Below are positions 4,139 to 52,100 of a stretch of 64,000 bases of DNA, piece after piece. How positions within the stretch are numbered: position 1 is the stretch's first letter; every line of letters begins with the position of its first letter. The stretch covers positions 124,001 through 188,000 of the forward strand of contig JAPMXV010000070.1 in the NCBI GenBank assembly GCA_026936335.1, written 5' to 3'. The notes beneath the pieces are model-generated. The model did no database searches, was not told the origin of the DNA, and saw only the letters and a program-made list of their open reading frames with translations. Source of the stretch: Mantamonas sphyraenae STR306. Lineage: Eukaryota > Protista > CRuMs. Made by a program: the position numbers and the translations under genes.

Positions 4139-4292
4139 CGCGCGTCGGTTACTTTTTTGGCGGGAGGGTCTGGTGCGTTTGGGGGGGCGGCTTTGGACGA
4201 CGGCGTCGGGAGGCGCTTGCGGGTTTGGTGTGTGCATTGTGTGGCGTGATGGGGAGTTGGTGTGTGGGTGTTGGGTGGCCTGTGGTGTTGTG

Positions 4293-5843
4293 CGCGTGTG
4301 TACGCTGACCCTGGATGATGATCACCACAGCCAACGGCCCCCTTGTGTAGGTCCCCCCCCCCATGCCGTGCCATTCCCTGCCCCAACCAGACATACTAGC
4401 CAGTGTGCCTTCCACCCCGTGGCACTCTGGATTCAACGCTGGGAGATTCCTGCCACTCCAACGCGTGTGTGTACGCTGACGCTGGATGATGATCACCACA
4501 GCCAACGGCCCCCTTGTGTAGGTCCCCCCCCATGCCGTGCCATTCCCTGCCCCAACCAGACATACTAGCCAGTGTGCCTACCACCCCGTGGCACTCTGGA
4601 TTCAACGCTGGGAGATTCGATTCCACCTCTCCAACGCGTGTGTGTACGCTGACCCTGGATGATGATCACCACAGCCAACGGCCCCCTTGTGTAGGTCCCC
4701 CCCCCCATCCCGTGCCATTCCCTGCCCCCAACCAGACATACTAGCCAGTGTGCCTACCACCCCGTGGCACTCTGGATTCAACGCTGGGAGATTCGATTCC
4801 ACCTCTCCAACGCGTGTGTGTACGCTGACGCTGGATGATGATCACCACAGCCAACGGCCCCCTTGTGTAGGTCCCCCCCCCCATCCCGTGCCATTCCCTG
4901 CCCCAACCAGACATACTAGCCAGTGTGCCTTCCACCCCGTGGCACTCTGGATTCAACGCTGGGAGATTCCTGCCACTCCAACGCGTGTGTGTACGCTGAC
5001 GCTGGATGATGATCACCACAGCCAACGGCCCCCTTGTGTAGGTCCCCCCCCCATGCCGTGCCATTCCCTGCCCCAACCAGACATACTAGCCAGTGTGCCT
5101 ACCACCCCGTGGCACTCTGGATTCAACGCTGGGAGATTCGATTCCACCTCTCCAACGCGTGTGTGTACGCTGACCCTGGATGATGATCACCACAGCCCCC
5201 TTGTGTAGGTCCCCCCCCCCATGCCGTGCCATTCCCTGCCCCAACCAGACATACTAGCCAGTGTGCCTACCACCCCGTGGCACTCTGGATTCAACGCTGG
5301 GAGATTCGATTCCACCTCTCCAACGCGTGTGTGTACGCTGACCCTGGATGATGATCACCACAGCCAACGGCCCCCTTGTGTAGGTCCCCCCCCCATGCCG
5401 TGCCATTCCCTGCCCCAACCAGACATACTAGCCAGTGTGCCTACCACCCCGTGGCACTCTGGATTCAACGCTGGGAGATTCGATTCCACCTCTCCAACGC
5501 GCGTGTGTACGCTGACCCTGGATGATGATCACCACAGCCAACGGCCCCCCTTGTGTAGGTCCCCCCCCTCCCGTGCCATTCCCTGCCCCAACCAGACATA
5601 CTAGCCAGTGTGCCTTCCACCCCGTGGCACTCTGGATTCAACGCTGGGAGATTCGATTCCACCTCTCCAACGCGTGTGTGTACGCTGACCCTGGATGATG
5701 ATCACCACAGCCAACGGCCCCCTTGTGTAGGTCCCCCCCCATGCCGTGCCATTCCCTGCCCCAACCAGACATACTAGCCAGTGTGCCTTCCACCCCGTGG
5801 CACTCTGGATTCAACGCTGGGAGATTCGATTCCACCTCTCCAA
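4293..5843. repeat. ~172-176-bp tandem satellite, 9 copies
   Basis: Unit starts cgcgtgtgt(gt)acgctgac(c/g)ctggatgatgatcaccacagcc at about 4293, 4462, 4634, 4810, 4981, 5155, 5323, 5498 and 5670. Variation lies mainly in poly-C length and in two alternative 3' ends. Confidence 0.95.
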
Positions 5844-6269
5844 CCAACCCTCTGCACCCTCTCGCTCCTCTCACCCCTCTCACTCTGCACACGACCTGCT
5901 TCTCAGATATACCCACACAATGAACTCAATCGCAAACCCCTGTACCGCAGTCGACCGCCGTTTGCCAATCTTGCATCACCGCCGGCCGATGAGGATGCAC
6001 AAACGCAAACAGGAGAACGGTGAATCCCCCCCTACGAGTTGCCCTTGTCGTAAGGAGGTCAAGTGAGCAGATGGCTTCCTCGCTGCTCTCTGTGACAACG
6101 TCGGTGGGTCAGAAAAGAAAAAACACAAGACTCGCCCATGCTCTCTTCTGAGTTGTGCTCTGTCCAAACGATCCGAAGACAGACTTGCAACACTGGGAAG
6201 TAGGTGCATATTGCACACCACATGCTCGTTGTCTCCTCAATTTTCTCACGTCGTCCTCGCAAATTTTCA

Positions 6270-6980
6270 CTCTCTTCTCCACCAACAACTCACCCAATGA
6301 CCGAAACAACCCTGGCGATAAACATGAAAGAACACGAGGAGTGCTGTTCAACACGGGCACCCTGGACGCATGCATCCCGAGTGCCTGCCTTGGCTGACAC
6401 ACTCTCCCTCTCCTTCTCCACCAACAACTCACCCAATGACCGAAACAACCCTGGCGATAAACATGAAAGAACACGAGGAGTGCTGTTCAACACGGGCACC
6501 CTGGACGCATGCATCCCGAGTGCCTGCCTTGGCTGACACACTCTCCCTCTCCTTCTCCACCAACAACTCACCCAATGACCGAAACAACCCTGGCGATAAA
6601 CATGAAAGAACACGAGGAGTGCTGTTCAACACGGGCACCCTGGACGCATGCATCCCGAGTGCCTGCCTTGGCTGACACACTCTCCCTCTCCTTCTCCACC
6701 AACAACTCACCCAATGACCGAAACAACCCTGGCGATAAACATGAAAGAACACGAGGAGTGCTGTTCAACACGGGCACCCTGGACGCATGCATCCCGAGTG
6801 CCTGCCTTGGCAAACACACTCACCCTCCCCTTCTCCACCAACAACTCACCCAATGACCGAAACAACCCTGGCGATTAACATGAAAGAACACGAGGAGTGC
6901 TGTTCAACACGGGCTCCCTGGACGCATACATCCCGAGTGCTTTGGCAAACACACTCACCCTCTCCTTCTCCACCAACAAT
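6270..6980. repeat. 139-bp tandem repeat, 5 copies plus a partial copy; contains a copy of the 3' coding end of the downstream ankyrin gene
   Basis: Unit ttctccaccaacaactcacccaatgaccgaaacaaccctggcgataaacatgaaagaacacgaggagtgctgttcaacacggg... with 139-bp period; about 85 bp align with 9075-9158. Confidence 0.95.
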
Positions 6981-6992
6981 TCATTGCACCCG

Positions 6993-9381: not shown

Positions 9382-11042
9382 ATGGTGAGAGTGGTTCGAG
9401 TGCACGCAGATGGTGTACGAACGGTGTGGATGGGGGTGACGGAGGGTGGGGATGGGATGCGGTTGGAGGTGGGAGTGGACGGGGGCGCGTACATTTGGGG
9501 CCGGTTGGTTTTGGGAGAGATCGGGTTTGCGTGTGGGATGGAGGAGGTGGAGGATGGTGGAGAATGGGTGAGCGAGGTGGGACAGGTGGGGGAGGTTGAG
9601 TGGATGGAGTTGGTCAAGGATGTAGGTTTGGAAGAGATGGTGGGGGGGGGGGAAAGGGGCCGGCACTGACACGGGAAAGCAGAGTGTGATCGTGTGCATG
9701 GTACAGGGAAGGATGATATACTGCAGACGATGGGAGGGCGGGTGTGGAATGGTGGCAAAGGCACAGAGTGAAGAGGCGGTGCAGATGGTGAGGCTGATGG
9801 AAGAGATGGATGCGCGGCGGGAGTTGCTTGTGGCACATGGGGTCACGGGTGGAGAAGGAGTGCCTGACGAGACGATGTGTGCGATGATGGATGCAGCAGC
9901 GGACGGGGATGTGGACATGGTGGAGGCGCTTGTGCTGGAGCTGGGAATGGATGTGGATGCAGTGGATGAGTTTGGGCGGACGGCATTGTTTTACGCGGCA
10001 GAACACGGGTACGGGATGGTGGTAGACAAGTTGGTGGTGGAGTTTGGGGCGGATGTCAACGCTGCGGATGAGGATGGCTGGACAGCATTGTTGTCGGCCG
10101 TAGAGGAGGGGCATGAACCCCTCGTTCAAACCCTTCTGGAACACGGGGCGGATGTCAACGCTGCGGATCAGGATGGCTGGACAGCATTGATGTCGGCCGC
10201 GGAACACGCCCACGAACCCATCGTTCAAACCCTCATCAACCACGGCGCGGATATCCACGCAACCACTTTGGATGGAAACACCGCGCTGATGTCGGCCGCG
10301 GAACACGCCCACGAACCCATCGTTCAAACCCTCATCAACCACGGGGCGGATGTCAACGCTGGGAACCAGAAAAGGATGGACAGCATTGATGTCGGCCGCG
10401 GAACACGCCCACGAACCCATCGTTCAAACCCTCATCAACCACGGCGCGGATATCCACGCAACCACTTTGGATGGACACAACGCATTGATTTCGGCTGTGC
10501 AACACGCCCATGGACCCCTCGCACAAACCCTCATCAACCACGGCGCGGATGTCGACTCCACGTTGACCACAGGGATGACGACGCTGATGTTTGCGGCAGG
10601 ACACGGGCACGTGGATCTGGTGGAGATGCTTCTACGCTGTGGAGCAGACGTGACAGCGAGGCATGCCAACGGGTGGTCCCCGCTAGCCTTTGCGGCCTAC
10701 AACGGCGAAACCCAAGTTGCTCAGCTCCTTGTCGAGCACGGATCCGAGGTGGATGCCCATGATGACAACCATGAGAACGGGTGGACACCGCTGATGTGGG
10801 CGGCACAGCAAGGACACCTGGAGACGGTGGACAAGTTGCTGCAGTGGGGCGCAGACGTCACTCTTGCCACCACGGACGGCTGGACAGCCCTTCACAGTGC
10901 AGCACTAGGAGGACACCCCGAGACAGTGGTGTCACTCGTCCAACAGGGTGCAGACATGAATGCCCGCGAAGATCTTGGCTACACCGTCCTCGACGCGGCC
11001 CTCCAAAGTGCAGACGTTGACACCATCGCCTTGTTACTGTAA
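9382..11042 (+). CDS. Head-domain + ankyrin-repeat protein (about 11-12 repeats) with one frameshift
   Basis: Exon 1 DGVRTVWMGVTEGGDGMRLEV..GRLVLG; intron 9622-9682 (GTAGGT...CTGAC...CAG); exon 2 IVCMVQGRMIYCRRWEGGCG then ankyrins. An extra A in gaaaagga at ~10370 shifts the frame from ORF 9686 to ORF 10350..11042. Start codon uncertain. Confidence 0.75.
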
Positions 11043-22202: not shown

Positions 22203-22844
22203 TCAATCGCGTGCTCGCACCACCTCCATCAGCATCCCCACCTGCTCCTCCAGCTGGTTCACACGTCGTTGCAGCATCCACACACTCTGCGACGTCTCCT
22301 CACACCCACTCAGCTTCACCTCCTCCAGTCGCACACGCACAAACCCATACACAAAGCTCATCCTCCCGTCCTTCATCTCCACATCCCTCACCTGCTGCTC
22401 CTTCACATCCACCAGATCCAGATCCAGATCACAGGAGCCAGTGAAGAACTTGCCTCCCACACGTCCCACCACACGTGTGGCACCCTCAGCTGTGGTGCTG
22501 GTCATGGTGATGAGCATGTGGTCGTCACCCAGTCGACCCTGGATGTCCACCTTGGTGGCGGGAGTGTCCTCGAGTGTCGCATCGTCGTCGTCGTCGTCGT
22601 CGTCAGTGTGGTGGTGGTTGTTGTTGGGGATGGTCGAGTGGGAGTGCTTCACACTGGTGCTGGTGCTGGTGCCGCGGGTGGAGGAAGAGGAGGAGGAAGA
22701 GGAAGGTTGATGGGTGGTGTCACTGGTGTGGGTGGCGATGGCAGTGGTGTCTGCGTCGTGGGGAGTGGTGGTCTGGTCATCATCGTGGGTGTTGTTGTCG
22801 TTGTCCTTGTTGCTGGTCTTGGTGGTTGCAGTCATGGTGAACAT
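22203..22844 (-). CDS. Cassette partner protein copy 1 (Thr/Ser/Asp-rich N-terminus, beta-rich domain, C-terminal coiled coil)
   Basis: MFTMTATTKT...KVDIQGRLGDDHML...RVRLEEVKLSGCEETSQSVWMLQRRVNQLEEQVGMLMEVVRARD; the ORF is intact in 3 of 4 copies. Confidence 0.65.
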   Translation of the reverse strand: MFTMTATTKTSNKDNDNNTHDDDQTTTPHDADTTAIATHTSDTTHQPSSSSSSSSTRGTSTSTSVKHSHSTIPNNNHHHTDDDDDDDDATLEDTPATKVDIQGRLGDDHMLITMTSTTAEGATRVVGRVGGKFFTGSCDLDLDLVDVKEQQVRDVEMKDGRMSFVYGFVRVRLEEVKLSGCEETSQSVWMLQRRVNQLEEQVGMLMEVVRARD

Positions 22845-22948
22845 CGTCCGTGTTTGGTGTGTGTGTTGGTTGTTGGTTGATTGGTTGGGTGGGTGGGCGC
22901 AGTGGGGTTGGGGTGTGCTTTTGTACTGACCCATGGACTGGTGAAGGG

Positions 22949-22965
22949 TGAACTTTGAATGTTCA
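22949..22965. promoter_or_regulatory. TGAAC-N7-GTTCA palindrome in the divergent intergenic region (also at 30718, 37288, 40870)
   Basis: tgaac-tttgaat-gttca lies between the two divergent ATGs; copy 4 has 7-bp arms (ggtgaac...gttcacc). Function is inferred only. Confidence 0.4.
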
Positions 22966-23166
22966 GCTGGTGAGAGAGTGCGGCATTCCCACCCCCACCA
23001 GCCATCCGTGTGTCCATGGCACCCACACACCACGTCATCATCTGTGTGCATCCCATCACATCCCACTACCAGTGCATCCATGTTCATCCCAAGGTCATGG
23101 CACAAATACAAACGGGAACCGGGATGCGCCTGCTCAGCAACAACAAACAACCCAGCAGCAGAAACC

Positions 23167-26100
23167 ATGTCCACACAAGAACAGCTGCTGACAAGCATCT
23201 ACAGAGAGCACTACGATGGACACCTGGCAGTGTGGATGGGAGTGGTGGAGAACAAGGAGGAGGAGCTGGCACAGAGGGTGGGAGTGCGTTTGGAGCTGCG
23301 GTTTGGTGAGAAGGTGACGGGGAGGCTGTTCTGCGGGACGGCAGCGTACGAGTGTGAGCTGCAACAGGGACTGGATGGGAAGGCGTATGTGCGCGGTGTG
23401 GGGGACCCGGGAGTGATGAAGTGGAAGAAGATGGGAATGGAGGTAAGTGGAGAGGGGGAGAAAGGGAAGAGGATGAGCTGGAAGAGTGCGGCAACACAGG
23501 AAGAGAGGGTGGACATGGAATGGGATGGGGAAGGGGGAGTGACTGACACATGATTGCAGGAGGTGATGGAGAAGGCATGCAGGGCAGGGGAGTTGGATGG
23601 GATGGTGTGCACGGTGCGTGGGGTGATGCTGCGGTTCAGGATCTGGGAGGACGGGTGTGGAGAGGTGGCGTTGGAGAAGAGCATGGAGGCAGCAAGGACA
23701 GTGGCAGTGCGTGTGCAACTGGCAGGGATGGATGAGCATGTGCAACAGCTGGAGGAGTGTGTGATGGAACAGGATGTGGCTGAGCTGGCACGGGGTGGAC
23801 GATGGAAGAGTGTGGCAGTGGCACTGGAGTTGATGAGACGAGATAGAGTGCATGAGGGTGTGACGGGAGAAGCAGTGGAGGAGGCGGTTGCGTTGGGGAG
23901 CAAGGCAGGGAAGGAAGAAGTGGCAGAAGCTGGGTTAGAGGTGTTGGAGCTGATGATGGCAGATGGGAGGATGGAAGGGATTGGGTGGAGAGGAGAGAAA
24001 GGAGAGACACTAATGATGGTGGCTGCGGGGAATGGATGGACGAGGACGGTGGAGCAGCTGGTTGGGCTTGGTGAAGATGTGAATGCTGCCAGGGAAGACG
24101 GAAGGACAGCGTTAATGAGTGCTACGTCGAACGCGCACACGGAGACAGTGGGCAAGCTGATTGAGTGTGGAGGCGATGCGAATGCTGCTCAGGAGGACGG
24201 GTGGACTGCACTGATGATTGCAGCACAGAAGGGACACACGGAGACAGTGGGCAAGCTGGTTGAGTGTGGAGGAGATGTGAATGCTGCTAGGGAGGACGGG
24301 TGGACTGCACTGATGAGTGCAGCATCGAAGGGACACACGGAGACTGTGGGCAAGCTGATTGAGTGTGGAGGGAATGTGAATGCTGCTAGGGAGGACGGGT
24401 GGACTGCACTGATGAGTGCAGCATCGAAGGGACACACGGAGACAGTGGGCAAGCTGATTGAGTGTGGAGGAGATGTGACCGCAACGAAAGCGAACGGGGC
24501 GACTGCACTGTTGATTGCGGCAGAGAACGGACACACGGAGACAGTGGGCAAGCTGATTGAGTGTGGAGGAGATGTGAATGCTGCTCAGGAGGACGAGTGG
24601 ACTGCACTGATGGTTGCAGCACAGAACGGACACACAGAGACAGTGGGCAAGCTGATTGAGTGTGGAGGAGATGTGAATGCTGCTCAGGAGGACGGCTGGA
24701 CTGCACTGATGACTGCAGCATGGAACGGACACACGGAGACAGTGTGCAAGCTGGTTGAGTATGGAGGCGATGCGACCGCAAAGAAAACGAACGGGGCGAC
24801 TGCACTGTTGATTGCGGCAGAGAACGGACACACGGAGACAGTGGGCAAGTTGATTGAGTGTGGAGGCGATGTGAATGCTGCTCAGGAGGACGAGTGGACT
24901 GCACTGATGGTTGCAGCACAGAACGGACACACAGAGACAGTGGGCAAGCTGATTGAGTGTGGAGGAGATGTGAATGCTGCTCAGGAGGACGGGTGGACTG
25001 CACTGATGAGTGCAGCATCGAAGGGACACACGGAGACAGTGGGCAAGCTGATTGAGTGTGGAGGAGATGTGAATGCTGCGAAGGAGAACGGGTGGACTGC
25101 ACTGATGAGTGCAGCATCGAAGGGACACACGGAGACAGTGGGCAAGCTGATTGAGTGTGGAGGAGATGTGACCGCAACGAAAACGAACGGGGCGACTGCA
25201 CTGTTGATTGCGGCAGAGAACGGACACACGGAGACAGTGGGCAAGCTGATTGAGTGTGGAGGCGATGTGAATGCTGCTCAGGAGGACGAGTGGACTGCAC
25301 TGATGGTTGCAGCAGAGAACGGACACACGGAGACAGTGGGCAAGCTGATTGAGTGTGGAGGCGATGTGAATGCTGCTCAGGAGGACGAGTGGACTGCACT
25401 GATGGTTGCAGCACAGAACGGACACACAGAGACAGTGGGCAAGCTGATTGAGTGTGGAGGAGATGTGAATGCTGCTCAGGAGGACGGGTGGACTGCACTG
25501 ATGAGTGCAGCATCGAAGGGACACACGGAGACAGTGGGCAAGCTGATTGAGTGTGGAGGAGATGTGAATGCTGCGAAGGAGAACGGGTGGACTGCACTGA
25601 TGAGTGCAGCATCGAAGGGACACACGGAGACAGTGGGCAAGCTGATTGAGTGTGGAGGAGATGTGACCGCAACGAAAACGAACGGGGCGACTGCACTGTT
25701 GATTGCGGCAGAGAACGGACACACGGAGACAGTGAGCAAGCTGATTGAGTGTGGAGGCGATGTGAATGCTGCTCAGGAGGACGGGTGGACTGCACTGATG
25801 ATTGCAGCACAGAACGGACACACGGAGACTGTGGGCAGGTTGATTGAGTGTGGAGGAGATGTGAATGCTGCGAAGGAGAACGGGTGGACTGCACTGATGA
25901 TTGCAGCACAGAACGGACACACGGAGACTGTGGGCAGGTTGATTGAGTGTGGAGGAGATGTGAATGCTGCTAGGGAGGACGGCTGGACTGCACTGATGAC
26001 TGCAGCATGGAACGGACACACGGAGACAGTGTGCAAGCTGATTGAGTGTGGAGGAGATGTGAATGCTGCTCAGGAGGACGGCTGGACTGCACTGATGACT

Positions 26101-27732
26101 GCAGCATGGAACGGACACACGGAGACAGTGTGCAAGCTGATTGGGTATGGAGGCGATGTGACCGCAACGAAAACGAACGGGGCGACTGCACTGTTGATTG
26201 CGGCAGAGAACGGACACTCGGAGACAGTGGGCAAGCTGATTGAGTGTGGAGGCGATGTGAATGCTGCGAAGGAGAACGGGTGGACTGCACTGATGAGTGC
26301 AGCACAGAAGGGACACACGGAGACAGTGGGCAAGCTGGTTGAGTGTGGAGGCGATGTGAATGCTGCTCAGGAGGACGAGTGGACTGCACTGATGGTTGCA
26401 GCATGGAACGGACACACGGAGACAGTGGGCAAGCTGGTTGAGTATGGAGGCGATGCGACCGCAAAGAAAACGAACGGGGCGACTGCACTGTTGATTGCGG
26501 CAGAGAACGGACACACGGAGACAGTGGGCAAGCTGGTTGAGTGTGGAGGCGATGTGAATGCTGCTCAGGAGGACGAGTGGACTGCACTGATGGTTGCAGC
26601 ACAGAACGGACACACAGAGACAGTGAGCAAGCTGATTGAGTGTGGAGGAGATGTGAAAGCTGCTCAGGAGGACGGGTGGACTGCACTGATGAGTGCAGCA
26701 TCGAAGGGACACACGGAGACAGTGGGCAAGCTGATTGAGTGTGGAGGCGATGTGAATGCTGCGAAGGAGAACGGGTGGACTGCACTGATGAGTGCAGCAC
26801 AGAACGGACACACGGAGACAGTGGGCAAGCTGGTTGAGTGTGGAGGCGATGTGAATGCTGCTCAGGAGGACGAGTGGACTGCACTGATGGTTGCAGCACA
26901 GAACGGACACACGGAGACAGTGAGCAAGCTGATTGAGTGTGGAGGAGATGTGAAAGCTGCTCAGGAGGACGGGTGGACTGCACTGATGAGTGCAGCATCG
27001 AAGGGACACACGGAGACAGTGGGCAAGCTGATTGAGTGTGGAGGCGATGTGAATGCTGCGAAGGAGAACGGGTGGACTGCACTGATGAGTGCAGCACAGA
27101 ACGGACACACGGAGACAGTGGGCAAGCTGGTTGAGTGTGGAGGCGATGTGAATGCTGCTCAGGAGGACGAGTGGACTGCACTGATGGTTGCAGCACAGAA
27201 CGGACACACGGAGACAGTGAGCAAGCTGATTGAGTGTGGAGGAGATGTGAAAGCTGCTCAGGAGGACGGGTGGACTGCACTGATGGTTGCAGCATCGAAG
27301 GGACACACAGAGACAGTGGGCAAGCTGATTGAGTGTGGGGGCGATGTGACCGCAACGAAAAAGAACGGGGCGACTGCACTGATGATTGCGGCACAGAACG
27401 GACACACGGAGACAGTGAGCAAGCTGATTGAGTGTGGCGGCGATGTGAATGCTGCCATGATGAAGGGGAAGACTGCACTGATGATGGCAGCACAGCACGG
27501 ACACATGGAGACAGTGGGCAAACTGATTGAGGGTGGTACCGATGTGAATGCTGCAATGATGAACGGCTGGACTGCACTCATGATTGCTGTCCGTCACAAC
27601 CATCCCGACATTGCCCAACTCCTTCTCTCCAACGGCGCCGACCCATCCGTCACCAACACCGCCGGCGAAACTGCCCACACCATCGCCGTCAAGTACTCCA
27701 ACAACGACCTCGCCGCCCTCCTCTCACAATAA
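23167..27732 (+). CDS. Cassette ankyrin gene copy 1: head domain + coiled coil + about 38 ankyrin repeats
   Basis: ATG 23167 (MSTQEQLL); intron 23443-23559 (GTAAGT...CTGAC...CAG, phase 0); exon 2 corresponds to ORF 23554..27732. Confidence 0.92.
24076..27580 (+). repeat. 99-bp coding tandem repeat (ankyrin modules) with very high internal nucleotide identity
   Basis: Near-invariant core ggacacacggagacagtgggcaagctgattgagtgtggagg(a/c)gatgtg recurs every 99 bp. Confidence 0.97.
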
Positions 27733-27807
27733 ACCCACCCCCTCTCCTCCTCTTCATCATTCAACATCATCTCCACCTTCATTCCTCCTTCCCTCCCCAC
27801 CCCCTCC

Positions 27808-28509
27808 TCACAACAACGCCATCTCCCCCTCCTTCACCACCCCCTTCCTCCACTCCTCAAACCCTCCCAAATACAACCTCTTCACCAGCCCATCAAACAC
27901 CTCCTCCCTCTCCATCCCCTCCTCAATCTCCCTCTGGAACTCAATGCACTCTCCAAACTCCAAATCCCCCGTCTCCCCCACATACTCATCACTGTCGTCA
28001 TCAAAGAACCGTTCCAGCACCTCCATCACCTTCTCATGATGCCTCGCGTGCCCCACCCCCAGATCCTCCCCTGCCTCCACCGCACTCATCATCACCACAA
28101 ACATCTTGCACGCCGCCCCGCTCAGCCCACTGTCCTCCGCACTCCTCCTCAAGTACCTCCTCTTCATCCACCCGCTCCACACTCCACGCACATGGCTGTC
28201 CCGCATCACCGTCTCCACGTCCTTCACACGCTCCTCCACAGGCACACTCGACACCTGCTGGCCCATGTACTCTGCAAACCGTTCAAACACCACCCCGTAC
28301 ACCTCCACCATCGCCTCGTCAAACACAAACTCGCTTGCCTGGCCCTCCCCCACTGCACGCATCAGTGCTGCCTGCACTCCGTACTCCACTCCCAGATACT
28401 TCTCGCTCTCGTCCTCGTCAAAGTACGTCTCTACAATCTCGCTCATCTCCCTCGCCGCCTCCTCCTCGCTCATCTCTGCACTTGCCACTCCACGCTGCAG
28501 CGCACGCAT
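27808..28509 (-). other. Near-identical duplicate of the giant receptor's 3' end (43101-43804); intact 233-aa ORF with RGS-like sequence
   Basis: MRALQRGVASAEM...GVVKEGEMALL matches the C-terminus of ORF 43101..60173 except for two residues. Confidence 0.9.
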
Positions 28510-30935: not shown

Positions 30936-32333
30936 ATGTCCACACAAGAGCAGCTGTTGACAAGCATCTACAGAGAGCACTACGATGGACACCTGGCAGT
31001 GTGGATGGGAGTGGTGGAGAACAAGGACGAGGAGGAGGAGCTGGCACAGAGGGTGGGAGTGCGTTTGGAGCTGCGGTTTGGAGAGAAAGTGACGGGGAGG
31101 CTGTTCTGCGGGACGGCAGCGTACGAGTGTGAGCTGCAACAGGGACTGGATGGGAAGGCGTATGTGCGGGGTGTGGGGGACCCGGGAGTGATGAAGTGGA
31201 AGAGGATGGGTGTGGAGGTAAGTGGTGAGGGAGGGAAGAGGAGGAGCTGGAAGAGTGCGGCAACACTGGAAGAGAGGGTGGACATGGAATGGGATGGGGA
31301 AGGGGGAGTGACTGACACATGATTGCAGGAGGTGATGGAGAAGGCATGCAGGGCAGGGGAGGTGGATGGAATGGTGTGCACGGTGCGTGGGGTGATGCTG
31401 CGGTTCAGGATCTGGGAGGACGGGTGTGGAGAGGTGGCGTTGGAGAAGAGCATGGAGGCAGCAAGGACAGTGGCAGTGCGTGTGCAACTGGCAGGGATGG
31501 ATGAACGTGTGCAGCAGCTGGAGGAGTGTGTGATGGAACAGGATGTGGTTGAGCTGGCACGGGGTGGACGATGGAAGAGTGTGGGGGTGGCACTGGAGTT
31601 GATGAGACGAGATGGAGTGCACGAGGGTGTGACTGGAGAAGCAGTGGGGGAGGTGGTTGCGTTGGGGAGCAAGGCAGGGAAGGAAGAAGTGGCAGAAGCT
31701 GGGTTGTTGGTGTTGGAGCAGATGATGAAAGATGGGAGGATGGAAAGGATTGGGTGGAGAGGAGACAAAGGGGAGACACTGATGATGGTAGCAGCTGGGA
31801 ACGGATGGACGAGGACGGTGGAGCAGCTGGTTGTGCTTGGTGAAGATGTGAATGCTGCCAGGGAAGATGGAAGGACAGCGTTAATGAGTGCTACGTCGAA
31901 CGCGCACCCGGAGACAGTGGGCAAGCTGATTGAGTGTGGTGGCGATGTGAATGCCACGGAGAAGAACACATGGACTGCACTAATGATTGGAGCATGGAAC
32001 GGACACACGGAGACAGTGAGCAAGCTGATTGAGTGTCGAGCCGATGTGAATGCTGCCATGAAGGACAAGTGTACTGCACTCATGATTGCAGCAGAAAGAG
32101 GACACACAGAGATTGTGGGCAAGCTCATTGAGTGTGGAGGCGATGTGAATGCTGCAAAGGATAGCGGATGGACTGCACTGATGTTTGCTGCCCGTCTCAA
32201 GCAACCCGACGTTGCCCAACTCCTTCTCTCCAACGGCGCCGACCCATCCCTAACCAACACCGCCGGCGAAACTGCCCACACCATCGCCCTCAACAACTCC
32301 AACGACGACCTCGCCGCACTCCTCGAACAATAA
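30936..32333 (+). CDS. Cassette ankyrin gene copy 2: head + coiled coil + about 6 ankyrin repeats
   Basis: ATG 30936; intron 31218-31328; exon 2 corresponds to ORF 31323..32333. Confidence 0.9.
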
Positions 32334-43100: not shown

Positions 43101-46100
43101 TCACAACAACGCCATCTCCCCCTCCTTCACCACCCCCTTCCTCCACTCCTCAAACCCTCCCAAATACAACCTCTTCACCAGCCCATCAAACACCTCCTCC
43201 CTCTCCATCCCCTCCTCAATCTCCCTCTGGAACTCAATGCACTCTCCAAACTCCAAATCCCCCGTCTCCCCCACATACTCATCACTGTCGTCATCAAAGA
43301 ACCGTTCCAGCACCTCCATCACCTTCTCATGATGCCTCGCGTGCCCCACCCCCAGATCCTCCCCTGCCTCCACCGCACTCATCATCACCACAAACATCTT
43401 GCACGCCGCCCCGCTCAGCCCACTGTCCTCCGCACTCCTCCTCAAGTACCTTCTCTTCATCCACCCGCTCCACACTCCACGCACATGGCTGTCCCGCATT
43501 ACCGTCTCCACGTCCTTCACACGCTCCTCCACAGGCACACTCGACACCTGCTGGCCCATGTACTCTGCAAACCGTTCAAACACCACCTCGTACACCTCCA
43601 CCATTGCCTCGTCAAACACAAACTCGCTTGCCTGGCCCTCCCCCACTGCACGCATCAGTGCTGCCTGCACTCCGTACTCCACTCCCAGATACTTCTCGCT
43701 CTCGTCCTCGTCAAAGTACGTCTCTACAATCTCGCTCATCTCCCTCGCCGCCTCCTCCTCGCCCATCTCTGCACTCGCCACTCCACGCTGCAGCGCACGC
43801 ATCCTCCTCCACGCCTCCACCTTCACCTCCTTCATCGGTGCCAACGTCGCACCCAGCACCCTCTCCACATGCTCATCTGCAAACTCAAAGAACTTTGCGC
43901 GCAGTCGCTGCTCTCGCAGCACCTCCATCGGCCTGCGGATGCGTTCCTCCATCGACAGTCCCATCTGCACAGAGTCTGCACGTTCCTGCAGCCTCGCCAG
44001 CAGCGTCGCACGCCTTGCAGCTGCCTTGAACTTCAGCCGTGCGTTGGCTGCTGCCATCACCTGTGTCTCGGACAATCCTTCCACCTTGCGCACTGTCTTT
44101 CCACTCGATCCTGGGCTTGCCGGGCTCGCATCAAACTTCTCCAACAAACTGTCCCGCATCGCCTGCTTCTCCGCCTTGATGCGTCGTTCCTCCAGCTGTG
44201 CTGCCAGGTTCGCTTCCATCTCCTGCACGTACTTCTGCTTGCGTGCAATCTTGATAAACTCGCGCACAATGACGACGCCAAACACAGACAGCACAATCGC
44301 ATTCACTGCCAGCAGCACCGCAGAGATCATCGTCTCCTCCGCCTTGGTTGTCTCTCCGCTGTAGAACATCAGTCCCGTCAGCAGCGTCACTGTCGTTGCC
44401 AGCAGACTCATCGTCTCCAGGTTGGTTGCCTGCTGCTGCTGGAACGGCCGTGCGTACAGATGCACCACAAGTGCACCCATGCTCATCCACAGTCCGCTGT
44501 ACAGCTGCGACAGCGGCTCAAACCGGAAGTACACAATGATGGCCACCACACTCAGCTTGCGCACCACAATCATGATTTCCCAGAAGTACCGCTTCTTCGA
44601 GTAGCCATCGTACAGGAATCGGTACCGTGCCATCACCGTCGGTTTGGACAGGAACTTGCGGTTCTTGTACAGCACACCCAGCGCAGCAAACGGCACACCC
44701 AGGCAAAAGATAAACACCATGGGCAGGGCAAGGGAGAAGCGGTAGTACAGGTACAGCGGGTCTGTGCACGAGATGCTCATGTCTGTCTCCAGATACGTCG
44801 AGTCGTCCTCCAACCTGTAGCAATTGAACACGGCAAAGATGCCCTTGCTCACCGTCGGGTGCGAAATGAACAGGATGACCATGATGCTCAGAGCATACAT
44901 GTTCTTGAGATGGTATCGCCACGCCTCCATATCGCTCATGCGTGCCTCTGTGCCCACACGCCTGCCCGACGCTGCCAATGCCTTCTTGTCCTGCTCCTTC
45001 TTCAACAGATCCAGAAGCTTGGCACGGTCGTCCTCATCCTCCACGTTAAAGTTGGTCGTGCGCTCAATCTCCAGCTCCGGACGCTTCACCTTGATGCCCA
45101 GACGCGGGGCAACCCAGCGCACCCAGACATACACAAGGGAAAACACCACCGCCGGCGCACTGACGGCAAAGAACGGCAGCATTAGGTAGCCGTTGAGGCG
45201 GTCAAAGTAGTTCCAACCCGTGGCACAGTCGATGGGATGCAGCTTCAGCGTAAACAGGGCCAACTGCGACGTTTCCATCAGACTCTGTGTTTCACTCGTC
45301 CAATTCAGTCGGAACTCGCCCACAAAGGCCAACACCTGCAGGTAGTTCAGCAGGATCTTCATGATGATCGACGCCGACGACTTTTCGCCCGTGGCCGTGC
45401 GGATGAGAAACAGGATCATGGCGGTGGCCGCGAGGAAGAAGAGGACGACCAGCACGTAGTCGCCGCCTCCGTTGTCACAAATCAGACACTTGACGCCAAA
45501 CTTGCCATAGTTGGGTTCGCACACGGAGCACAGCGGACCCGTGTAGCCCACCGCACACGTCGAGTTGGGTCCTCCCTCACACGCCTCCTTGACCTGGCAC
45601 TTTTCAAACCGCGACGATCCGGGACGGATGCTGTAGTATCCTATCTGCGCCTCGATCTCCTTGCCCTGCACACACACGCCGCCTGTGGTGCACTTCTTGC
45701 ACGTTCGGACGCCGTCCACCAACACTTCAAAGAAGCCACCCACACAGGAGCAGCCTGCGAGCGAAGGCACGCTCTTGAGACCACTGGTGTCCATGTTGGC
45801 CGGACACGCGGTGCACTCCACCTGCCCTGCCTTGTCCTGGTACGTGACCGGAGGACACGACTCGCACACCTGTCCCGTGGCTGTGGGCAACGAAAAGAAG
45901 CCCTCCAGGCATTGGCACACAAACGCATTGTTGGGATCCGGTTTGCTGTTGGGTGTCACCGACGAGCATGGCACCACCGTCACCGCCTTGGACAGACGCA
46001 ACGGTGTGACACCAACCAGCACAGGCGCAGAAAACACAAGGTCGTACTGCACGCCGTACTTGCCACGGAAGCCCAACGAGGCAAAGGTGACGTTGCCCTT

Positions 46101-49100
46101 GGCATCGCTCACCTCGGCTGTGTTGCGCAGCAACAGTGTGGAATCGCCCTCCACCTCCACAATCAACGAGACCCCACTGCGGTTCACTGCATTGCCCAGG
46201 CGATCCTGCAGCTGCACACTCAACGGAGGCGACAGTGCATTCACGTTGTCCAGGGTGCGGTTCATGTTGGCATCCAGCGGTTTCAGCTGGGCCACGGGGC
46301 CCGGCAGCACCCACACACGCACACGGAACTCCTGGTAGCCCGTGGCACCAAAGTAGATGTTGTACGGTCCCTCCAGCGACGCCAACAGCAGCGTGTTGAA
46401 CGTCACCTGCGTCGTCACCTGCAGCGTGGTGTTGCCACCCACCAGTTCCGGTCCACGCAGGTTGAAGTTGTTGTGTCCCTCTGCCGTGTCGCCACCATCC
46501 GTGGACGGCAACTCGTCGCCCGTGTCCGGATCCGTTTCCACCTCACCCGACGGCCTGTCTGCACGTGCAGTCACGGTCAGTGGATGGGCCAGCTGCGGCA
46601 CGGCGTTGCCTCCTGCGTCCACCAACAGGATGAGCATGGGAGGCACCTGTGTGCCTGCGCCCGCCACCCCGGAGTACGTGGCGTAGCGTGTGCGTGTGCC
46701 GTTCACAATCAGCTGGTCGGGCTGGCCCACCGTCACGTTGACCGACACCTGCGCCGGTTGCAGGTTGGGTGCACTCAACACAAACGTGTGCACGCCCACA
46801 CGCGGACGCACCAGTTGCACACTTGCAAACGTGGCCGTGCCACTCGTCGTCTGCTCCTCCACACGTCCGCGCACAACCACATTGCTCAACACACGATCCT
46901 CACTCCTGGAGTACGACCCGGGCGACGACACAACCGTCGCCGTCACCTTGCGGCTCGACGCATCCACAAAGCCCAACTTGTTGCCACCCACATCACGCAC
47001 ACTCACCACCACAGGCGGCACCACACTCACAATCGAACACGTCAACTGCCGCACCCCGGCGGCATCCACCACCAGCTGCGTCGCCGATCCCTGCACCACA
47101 CGCAGCGCAAACGTCACGTTGGACAGGCCCACACTGGACACGTTGAACACATAGCGTCCCACTTGCGGTGCATACACCTCCATGCTGCGCACCACAAGCG
47201 TGCCGTTGCGCATCACGGTGTCCACCCCCTGGGCAAAGTCCAGTGGCTGTCCCGCGTCGCTGCTCACCATCTGCACACGCACGGGACGCTGGTTGGCCAT
47301 GTCCGACACACCCACCGGTGTGCCTCCTGCATCCAAGGCCACCAACGACAAGGCCTTGAGCTTCATCGTGGCCACACAGGCACGCACGCTGTCCTGCACA
47401 CGCTGGTCACTGGCGATGTACAACGCACGCGCAGGGCCCACACGCACACCCACAGCCACCGTGGCACTCGTCAGTCCCGTGCCACTCAGCGTCACTGTGT
47501 ACGTGCCCACTGCGGGACGCACAAACGCAAGCGAGGCCCACTGAGCACGTGAGCCTGCAACCACCGCGGTGCCATTGCCCACCATGGTCGCTCCCGTCAC
47601 AGTGGCACTCAAGGCCATCCCTGCGTTCAGCGTGGTCGCACTTCCACCTGCGTCCAGCAGAGTCACCGCAATCGTGTCCAGCGCCGTCTCCTCCACACTT
47701 GCGTGTGCCACACTCGTGTAGGCATCCGCACGCAACGACACGGCAGGGCCTTCCAGCACACGCACAGACACGGTGACGTTGGACAGACCCGCTGCCATCA
47801 GTGTCATCCAATGCACACCCTGCGTCGGGTTGCGCACACGCACACTTGCATTCACCACACCCGCACTGCTGCTCCAGCTCTGTCCGCTCACCACGTCCAG
47901 TGTGTCGCTCACCACACGCACCGCGCGTGCACTCGTGTCCAGTGTGCCCACAAAGAAGCCGCTTGCCTCGATGGCATGCGACACCACAGCACCCACCGTC
48001 ACCTCGTGGCGACTGGCCACCGCGGTGTTGTTCCCTGCCACCAGACGCTGATCCAACGCGGGTCCAGGCACCACCGTCACGTTCACCGACACGTTGACCA
48101 ATCCCACAGAGGTCAGTGTCAACACATACGACCCATGCGTGGGCCTCTGCAGCCACAGTCCGCTCACCGACACGCTGCCATTCACCATGCTCCAGCTCAT
48201 CTGTCCCTGCACGGGCACAGGCACACTTGTGCCCTGCACCGTCACCGTACGCACGGTCTCGTCGGTGCCACCCACCGCCGTGCCACTGGCATCCACAGCC
48301 TGCACACCCAGCGCCGGCAGCATGGTTTGCACCAGACTCGCACGCGTGGCAGACGTCGTGTTCACCACCAGACGCACAGGCGGACCCACCCGCACCTCCA
48401 CCGTCTCTGTCGTCGCCAGCAGTCCCGTCGACGAAAACCCAAGTGTGTACGTGTCGGCCACCGGTGCCACCAGCGCCAAATCCGTAAAGTTGACCCGGCC
48501 GCCTGTCATCTGTCCAATCACCGCGCCTGTCAGCGTGGGCAACGACGCACCGTTGGCCGCCGATTGCAGCTGCACAAACACAAAGCGTGTGGCCGTGTCG
48601 CTGGATCCCACTGTGTTGCCACCCACGTCGCGCAACTCCAACGCAAGCGCAGGGAGTGCCGTCGATTGCAACGTGCGCACAGACGGGCTGGTGGCGCCCG
48701 TGGGACGCACCAGACGCACGGCGGCGCCCACCTTGATCGCAAACGAGGCCGTGGTCGGTGCCAATCCCGTGCTGGTAAACGTGAGCAGGTAGCCACCCAC
48801 TGTGGGTGCCACCATGCGCAGATCGCCAAAGGTGGCGTTGCTCTCGCCTGCACCAAACGTCACTGTCTTTGTGCCCACAAACGCACTTGCGCTCGCGTTG
48901 ATGCTCACGCTCACCGTGCGTCCGGCCAGTCCGTTTGTGCTCACACTCCCGCCTGCATCCAACGCCTCCATCACCACCGGCGGGATGACCACACTCGATG
49001 CACTTGCAAGCGCACCTGTCAGTGCCGCACTTGCCTTGCGCAGTCGGCTCACAGGGCCCACCTGCACCGTCACACCCACACTCACGTTGCGCAGACCGTT

Positions 49101-52100
49101 GCTGGACAACACCAGTGCATACGCACCCGCAGGTGCCGCCTGCATGGCCAGTCCCGTCAACACCGTGCGTCCCTGCACCATGCTCCACGTGGCATTGCCC
49201 GAAAGCAGCGCCACATTGCTGCTGCCTCCTTGCAACCACACCGCCACCGTGCGCACACTTGCATCGGTGCTGCCCACAAACGATCCGCCGGCGTCGTGTG
49301 CACGCACCTCGATGGCCTCCAGCGGCGCGTACGGCACACTCTCCACACTCGTCGACGTCACATTGCTCCTCAGTTCCACCGCAGGACCAATCACCACCGT
49401 CACGTTCACACGTGCACTCGTCAATCCTGCGCTCGTCAATCGCACCGCGTACGCACCGGCGCGGGGTGCGATCAACGTCACGTTGTCAAACAGGGCCGTG
49501 CTCACGTTGGTCAGCGTCGCCGCAAGCGTGCCAGCCAACACAGACGTGGTGGATGCATCCACACCCTCCACACGCACCGTGCGTGTGTCTGCATACTGGC
49601 TGGGCACCACGTTGCCCGCCGCGTCCAGCACAGTGGCCGTCAGGGCGCTCAGCGACAGACTGGCCACACTTGCAAACGGGCCCATTGTGTTGGGAGACGC
49701 CTGCAACGCAAAGGGGAACCCTGGCGTGATGGCCAGGGTCACCGAGGCACTCTGCAACGACATGACGGCACCCGTGGAATACACGTGCAGGGTGTACGTG
49801 TCGTTGGCCGGCTTGGACACAGCCAGACCGGACAGGGAAACCAATCCGTTGGCGCTGTTCTGACTGGTGGTGCCTTGCAACACCAGACCCTTGGTGGCAT
49901 TGATGGCCACCGTCACACTGCCTTGTTCCACGAGTGTGCCAGCCACATCCAACACACGCACGGCCACGGTGGGCAGCGACACAGACGCCTGTGTGGGCAA
50001 CACCACACTGGTGCCACTGGTCACTTGCAACTGGTACGCCGCACCCACCAACACACGCACCGCCACACGTGCCTGCGACGTGACACCGCCACTGATGCCC
50101 AAACGCAGTTCATACACACCTGCCTTGGGTGTGTCCAGCTGCACGCCGTCCAACACACCCACGGCGCCACTCAGTGTGATGTTGGTCACACCCACCACGC
50201 TCAGTTGCGTGGAGTTGCTGCCCACCACGGCGGCCGTCAGGTTGGCGGCACGCGTGTCGTCCACCACATCGCCGCCTGCGTCACGCACACGCACGGTCAT
50301 GGCAGGCAGGGTCACACGTGCACTGGCCACCACGTCGCTCACCTGTGCAGGTGTGCTGCTGATGCTTGCCGGCGGTCCGGCTTGCACCGTCAGGGCAAAC
50401 GTCACCGAGGTCAGATTGGCACTGCTCAGCGTCAGTGTGTACGACCCACGCGGAGGCGAGCGCAACACAAGCGCGTCAAAGACCACGCTGCCATTGATCA
50501 TGTACGCAGTGGCACCCACGGTGTCCAACATGGTCGGGTTGGGACTCACGGAGGCCACCACCGTGCGGTTGTTGCTGCCATCCGAGTCGGCCACAAAGAA
50601 TCCACCGCTGTCCAGGGCACGCACGGTGATGGCACCCAATTGGGTCACCGTCTCACTCTCGCGTGCCATGCTGTTGGGACTGTGCACACGCAGCTGCGAG
50701 GCAGGACCCACCGTCACAGCCATGGGGACATCCACACTGCTCATGCCAGCCACGCTGAAACGCAACACGTAGTCGCCCACGGCAGGCGCCACCAGCTTCA
50801 CGTTGCTGATGGTCACTGTGCCGTTGACCATTCCATACGTCGCGTCCTTGACCAGAGTCAGGGTGCCGTTCAGAGTGCTCACCACCACATTGCGTGTGCT
50901 CGTGTCACTGTCCCCCACAAACGTGCCACTGGCATCGTGTGCGTCAATCGTCACACTGGGCACATCCACCTGCGCCACACTCGGTTTGCTCAACACCGCC
51001 CCTCCCGCACGTCGTCGCAACTCCACAGGCGTGCCAATCGTCACCACCGCCACCGTGCTCGTGTTGCTGGCCACAAACGGCGCCGTCACACTCAGCACAT
51101 ATGTCCCGGGAAGCGGTGCAGCCATGCGTGCTCCCGTCAGCGTACACGTCCCATTCACGGGCGTGCATGCCACGTAGCCGCCTGCCACCGCCAGTGGCGC
51201 CGTGCCGTTGACACTCGCCATGCGCACTTCCGTCAGTGCGTTCTTCACAAGCGTCACCATGCCCGACACGTCCAACACACGCACCTCCACCGCACTCAAC
51301 GCCGTCAGCGACGACGTGCCATACCGTGCCGCCTCCACAGCCGCACGGTTCACAATGTCCAGCGTGTGTGGCTCGCCCTGGGTCACTGTCACCGTCACGT
51401 TGACGCTGTTCAGTCCCGCCGTCTCCATGCGCAACACATACACACCGGGCACAGGTGCAGCCAGACGCACGTCCGACTGCACAAGTGCACCTGCGCTCAT
51501 GTTGCCCTGCAGCGTGCCGCTCAGCGCAAGCGTGCTGGGTCCGCTCACCTGCGTGATGTTCACCCACCTCTGCGCAGCCGCATTGCCCACAAACTGCGAT
51601 GCCACGTCGTACACACGTGTGCTAATGCCAGGTGACAGCAGAGACGACGCCGTGCTCTGAACCGTGTACGACGATGTGCTTTCCAGGCGAAGCGACGTGG
51701 CCACGCCCACCGTCACCGTCATCGACGTGTTTGCTTGCAGGCCCGTGTTGCTGTCCAGAACCACAGTGTATGTGCCCACCAGCGGTGCCGCAAGTGCCAG
51801 GTCCGTAAAGTTGGCCTCTCCGCCCACCACGGCGCGCGTCAGCGTTCCTGTCAGGATTCCGCCTGTCACCGCCACGCCGTTCCGACGCAGACTCGCCTTG
51901 ACCCACGTCGTGCTCGTATCGTTGCCGCCAAGCACCTCGTTCTGGTGGTTCAGCGTACGCACGTGGATCGGAGGCAGGGCCACCGTCGCTGCGCTGCGCT
52001 GTGCCGCAAGTCCGCTCAGGTCGCTCGTCAGCTGCAGCGTCTCGGGCACGTCTGTGTACACACCGTGCACCTCTGCCTCGTACAGCCATGCGCCGTCGGT

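Follow-up and report, generated by a model that had tools for sequence, protein, structure and literature searches.

A long array of closely alike ankyrin repeats with a variable face in the protist Mantamonas sphyraenae

Is the long ankyrin-repeat array of Mantamonas sphyraenae STR306 a natural counterpart of a library of designed ankyrin repeat proteins (DARPins), i.e., a set of 99-bp modules that vary mainly at binding-surface positions and are recombined as half-repeats, as a sequence-only reading had proposed? We addressed this question for the intact gene g1, located at about 23167-27732 on the forward strand of a window of 64,000 nucleotides (contig JAPMXV010000070.1, positions 124,001 to 188,000, GenBank assembly GCA_026936335.1), to which all coordinates refer unless another contig is named. 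Based on our analysis, the g1 array is on balance probably the repeat domain of a young, lineage-specific, tandemly duplicated ankyrin family, which evolves by block copying and inter-repeat exchange and whose groove may drift or diversify quickly. The array itself is confirmed, but it does not represent a novel kind of system, since this style of repeat evolution is known from fungal immune receptors.

Tandem Repeats Finder revealed a single array at 24129-27587 with a period of 99, 34.9 copies, 87% matches, no indels, and a score of 4940. It is held in frame by an open reading frame (ORF) of 1392 codons at 23554-27732 on the forward strand; the frame is open over 4.2 kb and no indel occurs among 35 units. 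The register, in which unit k begins at 24034+99k, was confirmed by alignment to solved DARPins. The gene model is as follows:

23167..23442, forward strand: probable exon 1 of 92 codons, from the presumed start ATG 23167 to ...GGA ATG GAG before the GTAAGT donor, its frame continuing into 23560
23443..23559, forward strand: intron of 117 nt (GTAAGT...TTGCAG), present in all three paralogs of the window
23560..24033, forward strand: 158-aa head that probably consists of degenerate ankyrin-like helical repeats and evolves under purifying selection
24034..24132, forward strand: N-terminal capping repeat (unit 0), 26-43 nt differences from the inner units
24133..27399, forward strand: units 1-33, highly self-similar 99-bp / 33-aa ankyrin repeats of five recurring types with higher-order blocks
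27400..27597, forward strand: units 34 and 35, diverged inner repeats with 12-31 nt differences from units 1-33
27598..27732, forward strand: C-terminal capping repeat (unit 36; 54-67 nt differences from the inner units), tail, and stop codon

Units 1-33 (1089 aa) showed a mean identity to their consensus of 0.86 and pairwise identities of 0.80 (amino acids) and 0.884 (nucleotides). Compared with the definition of high internal conservation (HIC) repeats, which is at least 85% over at least 100 aa, the consensus value exceeds the threshold and the pairwise amino acid mean narrowly misses it. Array edges usually escape homogenization, as the diverged units 34 and 35 illustrate. A Pfam search with units 1-10 revealed Ank_2 with 270.6 bits (cut-off 27.3) and Ank with 228.6 bits (cut-off 21.1), which places them in PF12796 and PF00023, and the best sequence matches in the PDB were Ankyrin-1/2 (5e-104) and NOMPC (4e-61), along with many DARPins. 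An AlphaFold2 (AF2) prediction of six units from the single sequence yielded wrong helices at a mean predicted local distance difference test score (pLDDT) of 59.6, and was replaced by a model of units 8-13 (pLDDT 95.3) for which 22 in-register windows, drawn from g1 and from further arrays of the genome, were aligned. Foldseek aligned this second model to DARPin 6moi_A with a template modelling (TM) score of 0.95, a root-mean-square deviation (rmsd) of 1.4 A, and 44% identity, i.e., as an ankyrin solenoid. Since DSSP placed helix 1 of the model at DARPin positions 7-13, helix 2 at 17-25, and a beta-turn between bridges at 33 and 6, the labels "hairpin" and "helix 1", which the sequence-only reading had given to the variable parts, are right.

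Concerning the location of the differences, 38 of the 99 nucleotide sites were variable among units 1-33. The scaffold half accounted for 15 of 48 sites with a nucleotide diversity (pi) of 0.056, and the hairpin/helix-1 half for 23 of 51 sites with a pi of 0.173, so that the beta-turn and helix 1 carry about threefold denser variation than the scaffold. The concentration of variation that had been read from the letters was thus borne out, and every hairpin and helix-1 allele and mixed combination listed at that time was found again (18 combinations from 8 hairpin and 11 helix-1 alleles). The further statement that the framework is almost invariant at the DNA level went too far, as the 16-residue framework was exact in only 15 of 35 units and occurred in 12 protein and 20 DNA variants. 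Ranked by descending amino acid heterozygosity (DARPin numbering), the most variable positions were 10, 13, 1, 3, 31, 14, 4, 21, 2, 33, 24, 5, and 9. In agreement with the claimed coincidence with DARPin randomization, all six library positions (2, 3, 5, 13, 14, 33) were among the top 12 of 33 (hypergeometric P=8e-4; Mann-Whitney p=0.002). A DARPin library with a fixed framework is nevertheless not what was found, as positions 10, 1, 31, 4, 21, 24, and 9 vary equally or more and 15 of 48 framework nucleotide sites vary; the term library would also imply that alleles or individuals differ. Moreover, any ankyrin family should show this overlap, because lack of conservation in natural repeats was the criterion by which the library positions had been picked (PMC9611651). 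Nearly the same positions were variable in an unrelated ankyrin family, located on another contig, C51:

C51:209759-217765: tandem genes of an ankyrin family with the scaffold GHTETATMLLDRGA[DE]VDKA and a TPL core, variability peaking at positions 1, 2, 3, 5, 9, 10, and 13

The five types of units recur in the order A-B-C-D, with the seven type A units at an irregular spacing of 3, 4, 5, 5, 3, and 9 units. Position 5 in the beta-turn is Trp in 26 of 33 units and Ala in the seven type A units; in the modelled solenoid, the Trp residues would form a long exposed row that is broken every 3-9 repeats. Cys occupies position 26 in 30 of 33 units.

How the units became mixed could be traced at two levels. 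Based on two long exact duplications in the assembly, the array grew by blocks:

24851..25734, forward strand: recent duplication of a 5-unit block; 389 nt at 24851-25239 occur exactly again from 25346 (units 9=14, 10=15, 11=16)
26617..27285, forward strand: recent triplication of a 3-unit block; 372 nt at 26617-26988 occur exactly at a lag of 297 nt, from 26914 onwards (units 25=28=31, 27=30)

The ends of both lie at arbitrary unit phases, and much of the allele mixing accompanies them. Within units, 171 of 496 informative site pairs were incompatible, the minimum number of recombination events (Rmin) was at least 6, and the pairwise homoplasy index (PHI) statistic fell below all 5000 permutations (p<2e-4; p=0.0002 without type A). 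A plain duplication tree, the outcome that would have spoken against the proposed recombination, is rejected by these results. Multi-nucleotide alleles that differ by 2-4 nt were seen in all four combinations, e.g., REDG or QEDG with T-WN or S-SK. Block analysis showed that the hairpin and positions 9-11 are exchanged as a single cohesive block. Reassortment was seen between this block, positions 13/14, and the scaffold, which implies several exchange intervals, including one that lies between codons 11 and 13. In some cases a scaffold variant is linked to helix 1 of the unit before it, e.g., WN followed by GHTETVC. Exchange inside repeats thus holds to the extent that hairpin and helix-1 alleles are truly reassorted, but it is not confined to a half-repeat joint, and strict half-repeat modules had to be rejected on account of the several exchange intervals.

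Eight fixed differences, several being synonymous, set type A apart from all other units; they are confined to sites 49-89 and spare the scaffold, which fits a scaffold that is homogenized while distinct surface blocks are retained. A 60-nt probe for the type A hairpin/helix block found only seven copies, all within the array, so that an import from an extant gene of the assembly was rejected. Mutation similar to repeat-induced point mutation, or otherwise directed, was rejected as well, with transitions and transversions at 23:21 and no excess of C>T.

Two further copies of the gene are located downstream of g1 in the window, with the same head and caps:

31323..32333, forward strand: paralog g2, with 3 inner units and other hairpin/helix-1 residues
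41478..42983, forward strand: paralog g3, with 8 inner units in a two-unit (198-bp) higher-order repeat (93% matches), and different surface residues on the same scaffold

Two more members were found elsewhere in the assembly:

C54:27000-36500: two further family members, with RNI-type leucine-rich repeats (LRRs) in front of the same head

One of the latter has nine inner ankyrin units, again with the same scaffold, and is probably a pseudogene, because it ends in a frameshift inside a repeat (...GKEGVDCTDARSIE...). Altogether, the inner units of the four arrays number 35, 3, 8, and 9; the scaffold GHTETVGKLIECGGDVNAA is common to all of them, and the hairpin and helix-1 residues are specific to each array. 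The N-cap (unit 0) of g1 differs by 2 nt from that of g2, by 19 nt from that of g3, and by 21 nt from that of g4, and its C-cap by 8 nt from those of g2 and g3 (C-cap dN/dS about 0.7-1.7). Judged by these distances, both caps are orthologous between the paralogs, and the inner units lack one-to-one counterparts; for 34 of the 35 g1 units the nearest neighbor lies within g1, i.e., units cluster by gene of origin. The idea that g2 represents an unexpanded g1, its inner units corresponding to g1 units 34/35, was unsupported at the nucleotide level.

Among the three copies of the window (22234-24033 compared with the regions upstream of 31323 and 41478), the 1.3 kb upstream are 97-100% identical, the heads are 93-95% identical, and the arrays are far more different, so that divergence rises towards the repeat domain. 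The upstream parts also differ by an in-frame (AGG)n length of 0, 6, and 9 nt at 23254. For the head (ORF codons 1-160, 23554-24033), dN/dS ranged from 0.29 to 0.47 among g1-g3 at a dS of 0.09-0.14, which shows that these genes are maintained in a functional state.

Selection on the units was assessed from segregating changes and pairwise diversity. In g1, pN/pS was 2.4 at the six DARPin library codons (13 nonsynonymous and 1 synonymous changes), 1.26 at ten hairpin/helix-1 codons, and 0.45 in the scaffold and rest; in 55 units pooled from the four arrays, it was 0.67-0.69 for the surface compared with 0.42 for the rest. Pairwise diversity within g1 amounted to a piN of 0.25-0.26 and a piS of 0.16-0.21 at the surface and to 0.038 and 0.12 in the scaffold, with piN/piS values of 0.31 for the scaffold and 1.6 for the a priori DARPin positions. 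Set against the synonymous diversity of all codons, piN at these six positions was 1.9-fold (codon bootstrap 95% interval 1.08-3.8, P(<=1)=0.01). The contrast between surface and rest was significant in g1 (Fisher p=0.02-0.04) and in the pooled set (p=0.003). Between g1 and g3, surface pN and pS were 0.34 and 0.33, respectively, with a pS of 0.195 in the scaffold and rest. Constraint on the scaffold is clear, and the rate of surface change equals the neutral one or exceeds it moderately. The expected elevation of dN/dS at hairpin and helix-1 sites is therefore present relative to the scaffold (about 1.2-2.4 compared with 0.3-0.45; Fisher p=0.003-0.04), but it falls short of an established excess over 1 (p=0.34). 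Diversity-enhancing selection is no more than suggested within the large array.

Taken together, these observations show recent array growth by unequal crossing-over, in which blocks of three and five repeats were copied, and reassortment of hairpin, helix-1, and scaffold segments by inter-repeat exchange, be it gene conversion or crossover inside units. They also show purifying selection on the scaffold residues of helix 2, the loop, and the TALM core, and a rate of change near or somewhat above neutral at the tip of the beta-turn and the groove side of helix 1. On this basis, we propose that the concave groove is a protein-binding surface whose specificity drifts or diversifies fast between paralogs and probably between strains; this would be the regime known from HIC repeats in fungal NLR sensors, in a protein that lacks a NOD domain. 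Several results weigh against this proposal, in particular against its adaptive side: the excess of 13 to 1 changes over neutrality is not significant (p=0.34), pN/pS falls to 0.67 at the six DARPin codons when the four arrays are pooled, surface pN about equals surface pS between arrays, and the sole hint of expression is one spliced contig that stems from a paralog or another strain. The first three mean that plain relaxed constraint explains much of the pattern. These three are also what a neutral by-product would leave, i.e., a recent expansion by replication slippage or unequal crossing-over in which the surface is unconstrained, recombination is unavoidable, and diversification is unselected. 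Such an origin also agrees with the pooled surface range of 0.67-0.69, with the unrelated family on C51 that varies at the same positions, with the definition of the DARPin positions as non-conserved in natural repeats (PMC9611651), and with relaxed selection after repeat duplication, which PMC5120217 describes as a general finding. It is harder to reconcile with the 1.9-fold amino acid diversity at a priori positions within g1, with unit types that persist with linked synonymous differences in the hairpin/helix block only while their scaffolds are alike, and with paralogs that each have their own surface alphabet on the same scaffold. We consider a purely neutral origin possible, though on the doubtful side. 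Since support for a ratio above 1 is weak within the array, and comparison of the paralogous arrays puts it at about 1, we leave the adaptive reading of the diversity as a suggestion within the block-copying and exchange regime preferred here.

A different role, as a spring, spacer, or platform with periodic docking sites, might be assigned to a solenoid of about 37 repeats, in which case the 3- to 5-unit pattern with its Trp-less type A, and not diversification, would be what matters. Its length, which is at or above that of the long natural solenoids matching the array (Ankyrin-1/2 and NOMPC), the recurrence of unit types in the order A-B-C-D, and the tail-to-tail position of g3 next to a 5690-aa receptor-like gene with filamin, TIG, pentaxin/LamG, and TRP-like domains would suit such a scaffold. 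Array length is, however, not conserved, because the paralogs with 3 and 8 units retain the same head and caps, and the periodicity is irregular, as seen from the spacing of type A; we regard this role as improbable. Still less credible is an artefact or a dead gene, with array length and exact duplications being assembly errors or the gene a decaying pseudogene. Short reads do not allow such arrays to be reconstructed (PMC12222747), and one of the two family members on C54 does end in a frameshift. The public runs that contain this DNA (four samples of one study, available as short-read Logan contigs) provided pieces of 75-230 nt on the array, most of them multi-mapping, and none of the contigs of the four runs spans it; contigs on the 5' flank were paralog-like. 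At least three other isolates of the species carried SNPs in the flank of the array, at 28159, 28207, 28295, and 28312. Against these points stand the open frame of 4.2 kb without an indel in 35 units, the purifying selection on the head, the conservation of caps and stop codon in three paralogs, and an assembly of 78 contigs for 25 Mb, a contiguity that would suggest long reads. Beyond the preferred regime, one may speculate that these NOD-less ankyrin solenoids serve as a diversifying recognition repertoire directed against prey, symbionts, viruses, or self/non-self, with new specificities arising through block duplication and inter-repeat exchange. This would be a third independent use of a conserved scaffold with a hypervariable face and an unstable repeat number, after those in fungal NLRs and in jawless-vertebrate LRR receptors; we rate it as rather unlikely.

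With respect to the gene model, the ORF at 23554-27732 does not mark the start of the gene, since a consensus intron precedes it and the upstream frame is open and in phase. The intron is skipped exactly in one contig of run X4, which joins 23440/23558 with 117 nt out and GT..AG ends, and alignment of the paralogs revealed one 1-nt and one 6-nt indel inside it. Run X4, labelled "DNA?", also showed a very uneven depth of 0 to 176 on the unique flanks (22900-28400) in addition to this intron-free contig, and may be an RNA/cDNA data set or hold a processed copy. The presumed start of exon 1 at 23167 overlaps the start (23198) of an ORF on the reverse strand at 22203-23198, so that the two starts cannot both be right; in its N-terminal half, which may be non-coding, the reverse-strand ORF is of low complexity (T/S/D/H-rich). 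The array is also spanned by an antisense ORF of 1188 codons (24112-27678, reverse strand), which is a by-product of the stop-free repeat unit and without evidence of being a gene.

Exon 1 and exon 2 were searched separately. Exon 1 showed no recognizable domain, with no Pfam match and only weak leads in the Atlas. The nearest Atlas clusters of the head were all ankyrin (score 0.96-0.97), and Pfam Ank_2 matched residues 124-192 of the translated stretch 23554-24132. A word-based search with a 165-residue head, for which only proteins of 275-877 aa were eligible, returned none of 5388 candidates at E<=0.001. Pfam analysis of the head, exon 1, and the upstream ORFs revealed Ank only and no NACHT or NB-ARC nucleotide-binding domain, so that the protein does not qualify as an NLR/STAND sensor. 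Altogether, the g1 protein is essentially one long ankyrin solenoid. An exact look-up of the three paralog proteins, each taken from its first ATG, gave no match in the protein collection.

The genome of 25 Mb in 78 contigs (GC content of about 0.6) contains more than 140 ankyrin matches, and ankyrin arrays of high self-similarity seem to be common throughout it. Further features of the window are:

43101-60173, reverse strand: ORF of 5690 codons, tail to tail with g3, with GEX2-like Ig, at least 8 filamin repeats, pentaxin/LamG, TIG, ephrin-receptor-like domains, and a TRP-like membrane end
10046-10553: another 99-bp ankyrin-type array with 5 copies (two-unit period 199 at 88%)
4292-5844: non-coding-looking tandem array of 173 bp, 9 copies, 95%
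6270-6983: non-coding-looking tandem array of 139 bp, 5 copies, 97%

The domain content of the 5690-aa ORF agrees with a eukaryotic (protist) genome.

Compared with DARPins, the fold of the AF2 model is near-superimposable on that of 6moi_A, and the six library positions are all variable. Unlike g1, DARPins are synthetic and consist of 2-3 inner repeats plus caps; g1 also varies at positions 1, 4, 9, 10, and 31, carries Cys at 26 and TALM in place of TPLH, and has its diversity between the repeats of a single polypeptide and between paralogs instead of across a population of binders. Ankyrin-R/B with 24 repeats and NOMPC with 29 repeats share with g1 the very long uninterrupted stack and are its best sequence matches in the PDB. 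Their repeats are generally old, individually conserved between species, and of low inter-repeat similarity. Near-identical repeats of about 34 aa are also known from TAL effectors, in which two adjacent residues per repeat set specificity and arrays recombine; these proteins are DNA-binding, bacterial, and of another fold than the g1 array.

The closest likeness was found to the HIC repeats (WD40, ANK, TPR) of fungal NLR-like proteins, which are about 85% alike within a gene, have hypervariable positions on the concave face, are unstable in number, and are reshuffled within and between paralogs (Dyrka et al. 2014, PMC4986451); a further published parallel was provided by Ament-Velasquez et al. 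2025 (PMC12222747). The g1 array appears to follow this regime, with a repeat number that differs between paralogs, and a minority of HIC repeats are reported from proteins other than NLRs and from organisms other than fungi (Dyrka et al. 2014, PMC4986451); we therefore filed it with this known regime. In common with the HIC ankyrins Pa_3_8560 and Pa_2_8180 of Podospora anserina, it has 33-aa repeats that are about 85% alike when compared with their consensus, a variable beta-hairpin and inner helix on the concave face, repeat numbers that differ between copies, and reshuffled repeats for which concerted evolution is inferred. Unlike these, g1 is without NACHT/NB-ARC or a known effector domain, belongs to a protist and not a fungus, and comprises 35 units compared with 7 to >16 reported; positive selection and strain polymorphism are established for the Podospora repeats and not for g1. 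The regime, documented mainly in fungal NLRs and in bacterial and fungal WD40 repeats, would thereby be extended to a NOD-less protist ankyrin family of unusual length (35 units). If isolates differ in repeat number or order, the family would offer a tractable system for how repeat instability creates binding surfaces, and a natural source of well-behaved ankyrin scaffolds, given a predicted fold that matches consensus DARPins at 1.4 A. Arrays of this kind are invisible to short-read assemblies, so that comparative work needs long reads, as is also the case for the HNWD (het-e, het-d, nwd) WD40 repeats of Podospora (PMC12222747). With the latter, the g1 array further shares an inter-repeat identity of 80-100%, a small number of hypervariable surface codons, unequal crossing-over, and variation clustered by gene of origin (PMC12222747), while the HNWD repeats form a beta-propeller and have a known ligand, HET-C, and a known function in allorecognition.

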